Notes: generated by a model not told the origin, from the sequence alone. A stretch of 64,000 nucleotides of DNA from Selaginella moellendorffii (GCF_000143415.4 NW_003314267.1:1-64000), one strand, 5' to 3'; counted from the first letter of the stretch, positions 50,287-64,000 are shown. Numbers and translations: made by a program.

Positions 50287-50395
50287 AGTTCTAACACTTC
50301 CATTCTTACACCGAAAGCCTCTATGTCCAAAGAAGAAGAAAAAAAAAAGGATCCATTATGCACACAAAAACTCACGAAACTCACGCTCTCCTTTC

Positions 50396-50950
50396 TCACA
50401 GCTTCATGAAGAGAGATGCCATCGCCATAGTTACTACTGCCACGACCCAAGCTCCGGCCTTTCTTGACCAAGCTCCAGAGAAGTTTGGATTGGCGAACAA
50501 TGGTGATGGTCCGACTATAAAAAAAACCAAGAGAAGGAATCCAAGTTAGCGAAGAATGAGAGGCAAAGAACGAAAGAAAAGTAAAAACTTACTTCCACCA
50601 AAGGATCCGCACTGAGCCGATGGCTGAAATCCTTTCACGCCGCAGAGCGATGGCAGCTCCATCGCCAAGGTGAAGTTCATATCATTGAGGATGTGCCCGA
50701 CCATACCTCCAGCTCCATCGATGAGCGTACACATACAAGGAAAGTGATCCTTGAGGACTGCATGAACTCTAACGCAGCAATCGTCCGAGGGACTATTGTC
50801 TTGCATTTGCACGAAAGGCAGGCACGGGACGAGAGTGGAGAACTCACTCTCCAGATCACACGTCTGCCCCACGAACTGTGCCTGCAAGCCTGCAGAGCTC
50901 CAAAGCAGGTGAAAACTTAAAACACTGACCATCCAGCAGAGAAGATCCAT
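50396..50950 (-). CDS. Non-specific lipid transfer protein, probably GPI-anchored (LTPG), 2 exons
   Basis: Signal peptide and 8-Cys motif C-C-CC-CxC-C-C (PCLPFV, DDCC, PCMC, LPSLC). The second exon ends in a hydrophobic tail AWVVAVVTMAMASLFMKL*. Confidence 0.88.
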
Positions 50951-51268
50951 CTTCTCTCTGTGTTCTCTCTCGCGAGTCCCGGTGATTATCGAGTACACTC
51001 CAGAGGCTCCACATACTCGCTCCTCATATACTGCAAAATGCGTCGCAATCGTAGCAATAGCAGCAAACTAGTCCTACTTTATCTACCAGAAAAAAGATGG
51101 CTTTGAAACTTCCGTTATGGATTCATGACGTGACTACTCCACTCATTGACTGATTGGTCTGGAAGGAAAAGTACCGCGCTTTAGTGCTTAGTGGAAGAGA
51201 CAGTGTCAGGGATGATTCACTGGCATACCTGTAGTTTATAGTGTTCTATAGTGTTTCCTTGATCTTCT

Positions 51269-52181
51269 TCAGTCGAAGAGAGCTCTCAGGTCTTTGGCCT
51301 CGGCCTCCATCTCGTCCATTGTCCGGTCGCGTCTCTCCTTGTCAAGGTTGAGATGGTCGTTCATTGCCTTCGCTTTATCATCGATCTGCAAGGAAAGAAT
51401 AATCAAAAGTCCCTCCCGTGTCTCTCGATTCCGTGACAGAAAAGCTGCCACTAACTTACAGCGTCGTAGATCTCATCGTTCTTCTCGAAGTCGCCGGCTT
51501 TTCGCGGGAGGACGTGGATGTGTACGTGAGGGACGGTCTGGCCGGCTTGTGGCCCGTCCTGGAACAACAAAACGAAGAGCTCTTAAAAGAGTGACTTAAA
51601 CGCAAACAAAGGTTTTGATCGATGATCATACCTGTATTGCCAAAGTTAACGAGGATGCTTTAAAGTGCTTCTCCACTTTCTCACCAACATTTCTCGCGGT
51701 GAGCCAAAGATCGCAAACTTCTTCACTGCTGAGATCAGTGAAACGAGGTACCACCCGCTTTGAGCTCACAAGAACATGTATAAAAACGAAACAAAGAAAA
51801 AAAGAAAGAAAGATCAAGGAAGACAAGTGAAACGAGCAAAGTTCTAAAGAAAGGATATGACCTGAGAAAAGAAACATCCTTTTACAAAGGAAAAAAGAAA
51901 GAGAGCAATGCCTTACCAGGAACAACGGGCTTTAGATTCACGAGAGCAAAGGAATGCTTGGAGACCAAGAACACTTCTCTGGGATCAATCTTATACGGCC
52001 CAAAGAAGAAAATTTCCTGGATCAAAGCATCGACAGTGCGGCACTAGATCGAGCAAAATAAATGCTTCCATGATCTCACCTTGTCGAATGCTGGAGACGC
52101 CATTCCCGCGATCCTCGCAGCGCCACGCCCAGGTAGCGCTTGGAAAAATTGCGAGACGAGGGAATAAAGAGCCCTAGACAT
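51269..52181 (-). CDS. FHIT: Fragile histidine triad protein (bis(5'-adenosyl)-triphosphatase)
   Basis: [58 protein letters not shown] and RTMDEM..EA. Includes a 3-nt microexon at 51859-51861. Alternative start at 52103. Confidence 0.95.
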
Positions 52182-52232: not shown

Positions 52233-55200
52233 ATGAAGGGAAGCTGGAGGGCGGGAGCAGCGGTGGGGCACCGGATCGCGTCCTATGTGTGCCCGCAGCT
52301 CCAAATCCAATCGCCGCCTTCTCCCACTCGGGTAATCTCCATTTCCTTGCGAGAATGCCACGTTGATCGTCGTTCTTTCACCAGTGGCGTCGTCACATTG
52401 CTACTTCCAGGAGCGCCCGGCAGCAAATCCTTTCCGAGGCATCGGCTCCATGGCGCGAGTCTGCGGGTAAGAGATTTTTCTTGCTAAGAACCTCTTGTTA
52501 GTTTGAGTTGTTTTCTTCCAGCAAAAATGCTAGTGTTTGAAGAGTCTGTGATGATCGGGCCGGAGCTTTTAACTTTTGAGACTGGAAAGCTCGCGCAGTT
52601 TGCCGCTGGAGCAGTGGTCTGTGGAGCTGGCGAAACCAAAGTTTTGGTCACTGTTGTGTCCGACGAAAGGCTCGATGCGGGTCGGGATTTCATGCCTCTC
52701 CAGGTTTGATCTTCTTTTGTTTTTCTGTTCATAATCTCTCTCTTTGTCAGGTGGAGTATAGAGAAAAGTCTTATGCACAGGGAAAAATTCCAAACACTTT
52801 CATGCGTAGGGAGGGAGCACCAAAAGAGAGGGAGCTTCTTTGCGGTCGTGTCATTGACAGATCGATTCGGCCTCTCTTTCCAAAGGGCTACTACTTCGAA
52901 ACCCAGGTTTTGTTTTTCCTTGATGTGTCTCGTTTCTGATTTTCTCAAACTAAACAGATAATGGCCAATGTCCTTTCTTCAGATGGGGAGCAGGATCCGG
53001 ATATACTCGCAGCTAATGCAGCCTCGGCTGCCTTAGCATTGTCTGATGTACCTTGGAATGGTCCTATTGGAGTAGTACGCATAGGACGTGTTGATGGAAA
53101 GTTTGTTGTTAACCCCGACATGGACACGGTATTGTTTTCTCATTTTTTTTCTTTAGCCATTGAATTGCACGTTAAAATTGTCTATTGTTTCAGCTCAGCG
53201 GCAGTGACCTTAATTTGATATATTCATGTACAGCTGAAAGGTCACTTATGATCGAGACACAAGCGCGAGAAATAACAAATAAAGACTTCACTGCTGCCTT
53301 GAAACTGGCACATTCGGAGGTACTTAATTTTCTTACAGAAAGAAAACATTACTTTACTACTCGATGCTGCAGGCTTCCAAACTGATAGAACCACAGCGTC
53401 GACTAGCAGCAAAGGTTGGAAACAGAAAACGGCCTGTACAAGTGGTAAAGGTTGATGCCCCCGTTTTAGAGAAAATCCGTGGATTATCGGAAGAACATAT
53501 CAAAGCGGTGGTTAATAACCCGACGCTTGGAAAGGTTGGATGAAAACATTGAAGCAGTTTATTTATGTTTGTTTTTGCAGTTTGAACGAGGAAAGGCTCT
53601 CGGAAAAGCAATGGAAAATGTGCAGGATATTCTCAAGAAAGAAAATGACGAGGCCGCTTTAAGCCGTTTTTCGCTTGGCTTTGACACTGTAAAGAAACAA
53701 GTAAGTCATGAAAAAAAAGTTTCAATCTCCAGTACCTAATTGTCTCCTTTAGATTGTCCGGGAAAATGTGTTTCAAAAGAACATTCGGGTTGATGGCAGG
53801 TCTCTGACGGACGTCAGGGACCTTTATTGCGAGGCCGGAATATATCCAGCACTTCATGGTTCTTCTTTGTTTTCGCGAGGGAATACACAGGTAGGCATTT
53901 CGTGTTTGTGCATTGCCTCTATCTTTATAAGGTTTTAGGTGCTATGCACGGTAACTTTGGGAGCTCCCGAAGATGCACAGAAACTTGATTCAATAGTTGG
54001 TCCTCCTAAGAAACGATTTATGGTCCACTATAGTTTCCCCCCCTTCTCTGTTAACGAAGTTGGCAAAGTAGGAGGCCTAAACCGCCGAGAAGTTGGGCAT
54101 GGTAAAGTTTTTATTTTCGAAGGTCTCATTGATATAAGCCATTTCACAGGTACTCTAGCCGAGAAGGCCTTGGTAGCACTATTGCCGCCTGAAGATGAGA
54201 ATTTTCCATACAGTGTTCGAGTGAATTCAGAAGTCATGGCTTCTGATGGCTCATCGTCAATGGCAACGGTTTGTGGAGGTAGAAACGGGTCATTGGCTTT
54301 TCATGGATTTAACTTTGGGTACAGGGAGTCTGGCTTTGATGGATGCTGGCATTCCTTTAAAGTCTCATGTGGCGGGCATCTCCGTGGGTCTTATAACGAA
54401 CGTTGATGCTGAGACTGGAGAAATAAAGAACTATAAGATTTTGACGGACATCTTGGTACGTCTTTTCCTGCCTTTCTCTGACTGTACGCTGAATCATCTT
54501 TTTCTTAGGGACTAGAGGATCACTTGGGTGACATGGACTTCAAAATTGCCGGAACAAAAAAAGGCGTGACTGCGATCCAGCTTGACATAAAGCTTCCAGG
54601 AGTGCCACTGCATATTCTTTGCGAGGCATTAGAACCTGCGTATGTTGCTCGGAAGAAAATCTTGGATTTGATGGAAAAGGAAATTTCTAAACCGCGGGAC
54701 ACTCAACGACAAGATACACCTAGAAGAGGTAATGTTTTTTCCTAACTACAGGCTATAGTTCTGTCCTTTCTTTTCCAGGAACGATAGTTATTCAACGAGA
54801 AAGCATTGGCAGACTTATCGGTCCTAGTGGTTCGAACATAAGACATTTACAATCCGTTTCAGGTACATTTGTTCTTCTATCCTTGTTCGTGCATTCAAGG
54901 ACTGTTTACAGGAGCTCGTTTGACTGTGGGCGAGGATGGAAATGTCCATATTATTTCAAGATCCGAGAAAAGCTTCAAAGTGGCGAAATCGATGGTATGC
55001 ATGTTGCGCATTCTCGTTTTTCTTTTAATATTCGTTTTGCAGATTGAAGCTCTAGTTGGACGAGAAATCATAGTCGGTGAAACGTATACGGGAACTGTTT
55101 CCGCTATAAAAGATTTTGGAGCTTTTATTGACTTCGATGGCGGGCAACAAGGGCTTCTTCATATTTCAGAAATCTCACACGAACCTGTAAGCTGTTTAGA

Positions 55201-62395: not shown

Positions 62396-64000
62396 TTACC
62401 CGCTCATAGAGTTCGCCGAGACAACGAGGGGAACGCGTACGGAATGACCCTTGTCGCCGTCCCAGATCATATACCCGAAGGTGAACTGCTGGTTGGTCTG
62501 CGTCGCGGTGAGCGTCACGTTGATGACCACTGGCTTGCCGGTCCTGGCCTTGAAAACCCGTGGCTTCACCGACACGTCCACCCCCGCTGGATGCCTCACC
62601 GTGACGTTGTAAGTTTCCTCGCCGCCCAAGTTTACCACGGTTCGCTGCACCACCCGGCTGCCTATCAAGTTCGCCACCGTGATGTACGGCATGTTGAGGT
62701 CCGAGGGGTTCTTGTTTTCAGGCCCGCAATGAGCCCCCGTCGAGTACTCCACCGAGTTTTGGTCGGCCCCCGGGATCTCGCACAGGAAGTCCACGTAGTC
62801 CTGGAATCCTGGAAACGAGGAAGACGAGCGTTACAAGTTTGTGAAAGCTCTGGATCGAGAAAACGAGAAAAACCAAGCTTACCAACGTCGAAGACAAGGC
62901 CTGGATCGAGCGCTGCGGTGGCGTTGATAGCACCACTGCCAATGTCGAAGGGGCAGGCCCGGCCGATCGCCTGGGACGAGTTGGAGTACGGCTGCTCGGC
63001 TCGCGTCCAGCGGTCGCGGTTGTCGAAGTTGTCCGCGGTGGTCATGATCGCCGAGCGGATGGTTGAGGCGCGCCACCTCGGGTACTTTTGGATCAAGAGC
63101 GCGGCGATTCCAGCGACGTGTGGAGTGGCCATGCTCGTCCCGGAAAGCATGGCAAAGTTGCGACCTGGTATATAGAGTTCGTAAGAAAAAGAACGAGAAG
63201 CTAAAGTTACAGGCTTGCCTGTGAAAGAGTTTGCGTCGGTTCCTTTGGGTGTCCATGCACCCCATATCTGGTTTCCAGGTGCGAGGACGTCTGGTTTCAT
63301 CACGTCTGCTACCAGGGACGTAACCGTGTCAGCGTAGACCGGGCCTCTGGAAGAATACGAGGCCACTCTCGGTGCTTCCAATGGATATAAGGGGTGTCTC
63401 GAGTCCTCGATCCTGGCTTGTGCATCGAACCTCAACACTTGGCCCTTGCTGTCTTTCACAGTCTTCTCGTTGTAGTGTTGTAGTATGAGCTGCCAGAGCG
63501 AAAAAGGAACAAGTTAAGAAGCTTAGAAACAAAACAGCTTACGGCTGACGCGTTTGGATCCACCACAAAGCTCGCGGGTATCGTGAAAGGAATTGGATCA
63601 AAGACCGTGTCTTTGGTTGGCGTTTTCTCGGCAGATGTTGGGAAGACAATGAGGAGGCCAGCAGCTCCCGTGGCAATGGCAGTTGCGAGAGCGCCTTCGA
63701 TTTGTGTGACTGCACCACCAGAAAAGTAGTCGACAAAGTTGCAAATGAGAATCTTCCCGCTGACGAGAGTCTTGTTGAAAGGCGAGGGGTCGGAGCAGTA
63801 AGAGTAAAACTCCTGGTCGAAGGAAGTCACGCCGGCGATGTACGCATCCTGGGAATAAATCAAAGGATACAACTTGCGAGCGCTGGTTCCAGCTACAGAG
63901 CAAATGGTTCCCAAGGTTAGCGATGGCCTTCTACGAGAGTATTTCACACGCTTACCTGTTAGACCAGTTCCATACACCCATTGCCCGTTGCCGAGAATTA
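62396..64000 (-). CDS. Subtilisin-like serine protease (SBT2-like), 3' part; 5' end lies beyond the window
   Basis: PA-domain GKILIC, APRVASYSSRGP, MKPDVLAPG.QIW.AW, catalytic FAMLSGTSMATPHVAGIAAL, PFDIGSG and DLNMPYIT, then Fn-III-like GHSVRVPLVV. Confidence 0.95.

Follow-up and report, generated by a model that had tools for sequence, protein, structure and literature searches.

Ultra-short microexons of plants (PMC8831610; MEPDB, PMC12409088), with 1-nt examples in APC11 and VPS55, are constitutive coding exons that are conserved among land plants, are needed for a conserved protein motif and are frequently misannotated. Exons of a few nucleotides are too small to be recognized through factors bound at both ends, so that their reliable inclusion still calls for an explanation. 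Exon-definition cross-talk between the U2 and U12 spliceosomes, with the U11-binding splicing enhancer (USSE) of U11-48K and U11/U12-65K among its cases (PMC3584512, PMC8329584), involves a U2-type 3' site followed by a U12-type 5' site, each of which may influence the other. In U2/U12 twintrons and interlocked introns (Drosophila prospero, MAPK8/9 and TMEM87A/B; PMC8329584), major and minor splice sites also lie close together. For animals, in-frame microexons of 3 nt are described in Drosophila homothorax (PMC7392893), cytohesin-1 (PMC6314551) and MAP4K5 (PMC8632122).

The 3-nt exon GTC of the FHIT gene of the spikemoss Selaginella moellendorffii shares all of the above features of the plant microexons, but one of its flanks is a minor-spliceosome intron, and this AT-AC flank falls outside the design of the plant survey, which considered solely GT-AG or GC-AG introns (Yu et al. 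2022, PMC8831610). The cross-talk and USSE cases span an exon of normal size or a distant enhancer, whereas the FHIT sites are 3 nt apart, at which distance dual occupancy is implausible; in addition, USSE genes give a decay-targeted isoform, whereas the FHIT outcome is constitutive. Twintrons and interlocked introns are nested or overlapping and compete with each other, whereas the FHIT introns lie in tandem, 3 nt apart and without overlap, and both must be removed; the pair is not a twintron. The animal exons have the same size but appear to be alternatively spliced and to add a codon, with no sign of a minor-intron flank; the exon of FHIT, in contrast, is constitutive and falls across two codons.

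The review of two-spliceosome cross-talk (PMC8329584), which deals with cooperation in exon definition, with twintrons and with nested or interlocked introns, contains no tandem U2/U12 pair around a microexon. The main texts of the plant survey (PMC8831610) and of the MEPDB paper (PMC12409088) mention neither FHIT nor HIT, and neither U12 nor AT-AC. Our literature searches returned no paper linking FHIT with a U12-type intron, an absence in the searched literature that is not proof, no relevant match for a microexon together with a minor intron, and none on the exon sizes of human FHIT. The parts, a microexon and a U12 intron, are of known kinds; their combination, a constitutive exon of 3 nt, each end of which belongs to a different spliceosome, present land-plant-wide and followed in Selaginella by a U12 3' end that breaks the rules, appears to be undescribed.

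Our main reading, to which we assign a probability of about 0.85, is that the Gly-His codons of the conserved motif PGHVLV are broken by adjacent 55-nt U2-type and 81-nt U12-type introns around the constitutive exon GTC. The order on the minus strand is CCTG, the 55-nt GT-AG intron, GTC, the 81-nt AT-AC intron and ATGTT.

The window, i.e., the whole stretch of S. moellendorffii DNA that was analyzed (64,000 nucleotides), carries a six-exon FHIT gene of 188 aa on its minus strand, at positions 51269-52181; the lengths of the six exons total 567 nt, that is, 188 codons and a stop. The coding part of exon 1 (52080-52181; MSRALYSL...PAFDK, 34 codons) equals residues 1-34 of the NCBI FHIT protein of S. 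moellendorffii (P0045, 188 aa) and is followed by a GT-AG intron of 63 nt (52017-52079), the RNA junction 52080/52016 being found in three runs (joint 52015>52079, cut +1, in X1, X4 and X6). Exon 2 (51917-52016, 100 nt), placed by translation and by P0045, encodes EIFFFGPYK...KPVVP and the first base of the Gly codon. The U2-type GT-AG intron of 55 nt (51862-51916) comes next, then the exon GTC (51859-51861), which completes the Gly codon with its bases 2 and 3 and opens the His codon with base 1, and then the U12-type AT-AC intron of 81 nt (51778-51858), which reads ATATCCTTT...TTCCTTGAT...TATAC. Exon 4 (51632-51777, 146 nt) begins with bases 2 and 3 of the His codon and continues with VLVSSKR...TLAIQ. 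Intron 4 (51559-51631, GT-AG, 73 nt) is joined in four of four runs; exon 5 (51460-51558), placed by sequence and by P0045, carries the histidine triad (HVHIH); intron 5 (51386-51459, GT-AG, 74 nt) is joined in three runs; and the coding part of exon 6 (51269-51385) encodes IDDKAKAM...RALFD and ends with the stop at 51271-51269. A further GT-AG intron of 70 nt lies in the 3' untranslated region (51159-51228; joint 51158>51229 in four of four runs). The FHIT introns other than the two around GTC all appear, in the contigs of up to four studies, as clean joints whose minus-strand ends are GT..AG. When the minus strand was re-read, the sequence, layout and coordinates given in the earlier note for the two introns (51916-51862 and 51858-51778) and for the exon between them (51861-51859) proved exact; one small correction is that exon 4 ends at 51632 in phase 0 and not at 51631.

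For the family search, the window exons were searched singly and P0045 was used as the full-length protein; an exon-level word query led to a 125-aa relative, and a second query led to full-length proteins. Exon 4 of the window gene is matched by Pfam HIT at 5e-6 and aligns with residues 36-83 of solved FHIT structures, FHIT chains being the best PDB matches. P0045 is matched by Pfam HIT at 1.2e-26, equals the exon translations of the window except for one residue, and has PGHVLV. By sequence, the window gene thus belongs to the FHIT branch of the HIT superfamily (bis(5'-adenosyl)-triphosphatase). Over 3.9 kb, the locus of P0045 (GL377594.1:271602-275523) and the window share 98.1% identity, with 13 gaps; the two are thus of the same species and most likely represent its two haplotypes.

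Two neighbors of the gene deserve a remark. In the minus-strand gene that follows FHIT downstream, positions 50402 and 50291 (50291-50402) are joined in X6 and X8 contigs with non-canonical ends and with two unplaced letters, GT on the plus strand or AC on the mRNA strand; the genome would give AAGCT/GTGAGA...TTAG/AACTTC here, where slashes mark splice sites, and this does not fit the contigs. Alleles that differ, an artefact of the aligner or a further tiny exon may lie behind this joint. On the plus strand, a gene at 52465-54000 is rich in GT-AG introns of very small size (46-65 nt), every one of which is spliced in the contigs, and is annotated in the other haplotype as PNPase-like (RNase_PH, KH and S1 domains).

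The upstream intron of the pair has the form GTAAGG...TTTCTTTTCTCAG (also quoted as GTAAGG...TTTTCTCAG), with GT-AG ends and a polypyrimidine tract, and exactly this 55-nt unit is excised in a contig of X8. The signals of the downstream intron are those of the minor class, as the earlier note had proposed. The 5' splice site ATATCCTTT (51850-51858) agrees perfectly with the U12 consensus /ATATCCTT, the putative branch site TTCCTTGAT (51813-51821, branch A at 51814) fits TCCTTRAY, and the intron ends in AC, the end being TATAC/ATG (TATAC at 51782-51778), with the RNA contig resuming at 51777/51778. On both strands of the 64-kb window, ATATCCTTT occurs once, at FHIT, against 0.65 copies expected by chance, so a chance copy exactly 3 nt past an AG, where the reading frame requires it, would be very unlikely. 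A second U12-like 5' motif, GTATCCTTT (63862-63870, minus strand), was discarded: an AG follows after about 22 nt, too short for an intron, and the number of matches is within chance.

U12 introns have no polypyrimidine tract and an optimum spacing of 11-13 nt between branch site and 3' site (PMC3584512). The Selaginella AT-AC intron departs from both rules, with a distance of 36 nt from the branch site to the 3' end in both haplotypes and with 85% pyrimidine in its last 40 nt; the pyrimidine-rich spacer extends from the branch motif to the terminal C of the intron (51779-51812). A nearer branch site was considered and rejected, since between TTCCTTGAT and the acceptor there is no A other than the two of the terminal TATAC, and a closer TCCTT-like motif is absent. 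Downstream of the branch motif, no AC or AG precedes the true AC, a position that a simple first-acceptor selection would fit. We also considered a 9-bp hairpin (51836-51885, minus strand), in which AAAGGAUGU of the U2 intron pairs with AUAUCCUUU at the U12 5' site, as a means of masking this site before U2 splicing. It was rejected as a chance pairing: the whole region folds no better than shuffled sequences (z = 0.11), and the pairing is broken in the other Selaginella haplotype and missing in five other plants.

The alignment of FHIT loci across land plants, which the earlier note had recommended, shows that the positions of both introns recur from moss to eudicot. Exons of annotated FHIT proteins were placed on genomic loci by tblastn, and the junctions were read. 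In Sphagnum magellanicum, the U2 intron is 189 nt and the U12 intron 381 nt long, with the branch motif CCTTGAC 12 nt from the intron end; the corresponding values are about 426 nt, 344 nt and 13 nt (TCCTTAAT) in Amborella, 1149 nt, 334 nt and 10 nt (CCTTAAC) in Ananas (pineapple), and 8900 nt, 2527 nt and 10 nt (CCTTAAC) in Nelumbo (lotus). At each of these four loci, exon 2 ends in CCNG/GT and the next exon starts at AC/ATG. The string CAG/GTC/ATATCCTTT is invariant in the alignment of six land-plant loci (both Selaginella haplotypes, Sphagnum, Amborella, Ananas and Nelumbo), and it stays unchanged although intron length varies between 55 nt and 8.9 kb. Between the two Selaginella haplotypes, both introns show indels and substitutions, yet every splice signal is identical, including TTCCTTGAT.

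A metagenome scan with the FHIT alignment added two contigs (L025 and L026) of one angiosperm-like organism, which read cag/GTC/ATATCCTTTTAT and CCTTGAC...AC/ATGTT. These contigs (L025:531-925 and L026, i.e., Ga0314759_1016855 and Ga0314722_1003425) keep the tail of the U2 intron, GTC and a 378-nt AT-AC intron, and their FHIT sequence runs from HVLV to the stop without any of the downstream introns present in Nelumbo, Brassica and Ananas; they represent either a partly processed transcript from which the intron pair is removed last or a gene copy that has lost the other introns.

CCTTRAY lies 10-13 nt before AC/ATG in Sphagnum, Amborella, Ananas and Nelumbo, and the spacing in L025 is also within this range; against these values, the 36 nt of Selaginella bear out the remark of the earlier note that the branch site is unusually far from the 3' end. 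Because all other plants examined keep the short U12 spacing, the Selaginella spacing is a derived state.

In Brassica rapa, the GT-AG intron is present, CCTG/GTATGC...TTTCAG/GTCATGTTCTT (in short form, CCTG/GT...CAG/GTCATGTT), and the AT-AC intron is precisely deleted, so that GTC is joined to the next exon; Arabidopsis probably lacks the AT-AC intron as well. Chlamydomonas, which has been reported to have neither a minor spliceosome nor U12 introns (PMC2846911), has one GT-AG intron only, located at this very phase-1 site of the Gly codon, so the position of the U2 intron is common to chlorophytes and land plants. The U12 intron is dated by the same comparisons to at least the split of mosses and vascular plants, and, since the layout recurs in moss and in flowering plants, the whole U2/GTC/U12 arrangement is at least as old as land plants. 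This ancient, conserved layout is the main addition to the earlier reading.

Outside the green lineage, Blastocladiella emersonii (L009:420-490) has a GT-AG intron that splits the Pro codon (CC/C), 2 nt upstream of the plant U2 position, and Chytridium FHIT has no intron at the PGH region. Across eukaryotes, there are thus three distinct intron positions no more than 5 nt from the PGH codons. Mammalian FHIT isoforms (P0094-P0119) show no divergence near PGH; their alternative C-termini part right after ...SIYD(E/A), which matches the plant boundary ...EIYDA/IDD and hints at an intron position common to animals and plants.

The unusual 3' end raises the question of which machinery acts on the Selaginella AT-AC intron. 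The pyrimidine tract and the distant branch, both unlike textbook U12 introns (PMC3584512), could be read as a U2-type 3' end, with splicing then performed by the major spliceosome or through a hybrid pathway, as in rare U2-type AT-AC introns. The 5' site ATATCCTTT is, however, a perfect U12 consensus and TTCCTTGAT fits TCCTTRAY, both being the same in haplotypes that differ elsewhere in the intron, and all orthologues have textbook U12 3' ends. The known U2-type AT-AC introns, for their part, carry U2-like 5' sites. We therefore regard this route as very unlikely, with a small chance that the 3' end alone is recognized in a U2-like manner, and take the AT-AC intron as probably removed by the minor spliceosome, as its sequence predicts.

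The RNA evidence consists of Logan assembled contigs from four studies (runs X1, X4, X6 and X8), whose RNA nature is presumed. The search for the mature junction proposed in the earlier note gave exactly three letters between CCTG and ATGTT. This follows from the length of record 7 of X4, whose 350 nt are fully accounted for as 43 + 148 + 101 + 58 letters: 43 lie below the joint 51557/51631, positions 44-191 correspond to 51631-51778, 101 letters correspond to 51915-52015, and 58 lie above the joint 52015/52079. On the mRNA strand, 51778 is C and 51916-51915 is GT, and the record reads CCTG-GT-C-ATGTT, the identity of the GT letters being taken from the length accounting and from the fact that no mismatches or inserted letters are listed. 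GTC is accordingly an internal exon of the mature mRNA, in agreement with PGHVLV in P0045. The claim that GTC, between a U2-type and a U12-type intron, completes PGHVLV is thus borne out by the contigs with three letters, by the excision seen in X8 and by the five other land-plant loci.

The contig of X8 (depth 46) lacks the 55-nt intron; its joint is 51861/51917 after a 2-nt shift, with GT..AG ends. Since at least 27 letters lie on either side of the joint, the contig keeps at least 24 nt of the AT-AC intron. It is a partly spliced RNA, with the U2 intron removed and the U12 intron kept. The opposite intermediate, with the U12 intron out and the U2 intron in, is not among the joints listed for the contigs of the four runs. 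The one intermediate seen suggests a splicing order in which the U2 intron usually leaves before the U12 intron, on the basis of one contig in one run; the ordered splicing that the earlier note had suggested has gained one intermediate, and it is seen in that single contig only.

In the bin 51742-51875, the depth equals the share expected from exon sequence only, both in X4 (306.4 × 37/134 = 84.6) and in X6 (120.3 × 37/134 = 33.2), which means that intron retention is absent from these two assemblies. It should be noted that run X1 also covers intergenic bins, and its depth within introns may therefore be DNA. These values bear on the view that the AT-AC intron is a regulated retained intron giving an isoform of FHIT in which the Gly is followed by a 28-residue hydrophobic insert. 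Retention in the window haplotype would keep the frame (84 nt including GTC, with no stop), the first JGI model (P0122, SELMODRAFT_104256) translates through most of the AT-AC intron, and X8 has depth and one contig within it. However, the intron is 86 nt long in the other haplotype, so retention there shifts the frame; the conserved PGHVLV strand would be interrupted by the insert; the depth in X4 and X6 does not exceed the exon share; and P0122 is a prediction, not a transcript. We consider a regulated isoform of this kind highly improbable.

Barely credible is a single non-canonical intron of 136 nt (51914-51779, AA...TA) that joins CCTGGT to CATGTT with no microexon: it yields the identical mature mRNA, and one joint can place the contig (by the aligner coordinates, GT equals the first two bases of the intron and C its last), but the X8 contig removes exactly the 55-nt GT-AG unit alone, the internal AG/GTC/ATATCC is maintained within introns of up to 11 kb (as AG/GTC/ATATCCTTT), the termini would be inconsistent among orthologues (CT..TA in Nelumbo, AA..AA in Sphagnum), where two introns give GT-AG and AT-AC throughout, and we know of no splicing machinery that uses AA-TA termini.

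Annotation errors of a characteristic kind fall at the two-intron arrangement around GTC. PGHVLV is read in 160 of the 200 FHIT-family proteins compared, and in about 20 public plant FHIT models, roughly a tenth, the error lies exactly at Gly-His. The earlier statement that gene predictors usually miss this arrangement was too strong, as most deposited models read PGHVLV, while the expected failure does occur in that tenth. The RefSeq model of the spikemoss is right, and, as the correct RefSeq proteins demonstrate, the FHIT junctions have already been picked up implicitly by annotation pipelines. The models of Cucumis melo, Phragmites, Hevea, Magnolia, Tasmannia and Urochloa have PGN-VLV; those of Fraxinus, Olea, Spinacia, Escallonia and Sphagnum have PGHIL..., which is the translation of GTC+ATATCCTT; further wrong readings include PAH, PVH, PGK..., PGD and others. 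The Sphagnum magellanicum model (P0173) reads PGHILFCS, an error whose source in the DNA is a spurious GT...AG pair within the U12 intron, and in P0122 the Gly-His is lost and most of the AT-AC intron is translated. Judging from these characteristic protein errors, the misannotated species probably share the U2/U12 intron pair.

A mechanism can be proposed in which the small size of the exon is not an obstacle. Two spliceosomes, one with its U2-type AG factors and the other with the U11 particle on ATATCCTTT, presumably cannot assemble together on sites 3 nt apart, and by this reasoning the introns would have to be removed stepwise. Either first step would fuse GTC to an exon of normal size, after which the second step would be ordinary. 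The usual order would be the U2 intron before the slower U12 intron; splicing of U12 introns takes longer, and an upstream U2-type 3' site can be activated by a U12-type 5' site to which U11 is bound (PMC3584512). Skipping of GTC, in turn, should be blocked by the incompatibility of the upstream U2-type GT donor with the downstream U12 branch site and AC acceptor. With this route closed, the constitutive inclusion, over 400 million years, of an exon too small for exon definition would be explained.

More broadly, the placement of a U12 intron beside a U2 intron might be a general, ancient means by which land plants fix exons of 1-3 nt, with FHIT expression dependent on the slow minor spliceosome; the Selaginella intron would then also show that a U12 intron can function with a pyrimidine-tract spacer of 36 nt, contrary to the accepted spacing rule. 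We put this forward tentatively, as a doubtful generalization.

Taken together, the three letters GTC supply part of a conserved histidine codon at a place where plant models often replace or misread it, and microexon catalogues that are restricted to GT-AG and GC-AG introns cannot detect exons of this class. The FHIT exon offers a natural test of whether two spliceosomes can work side by side and in what order, and of whether the incompatibility of the spliceosomes shields a tiny exon from skipping, while the 36-nt spacing in Selaginella is a natural exception to the rule by which U12 introns are recognized.
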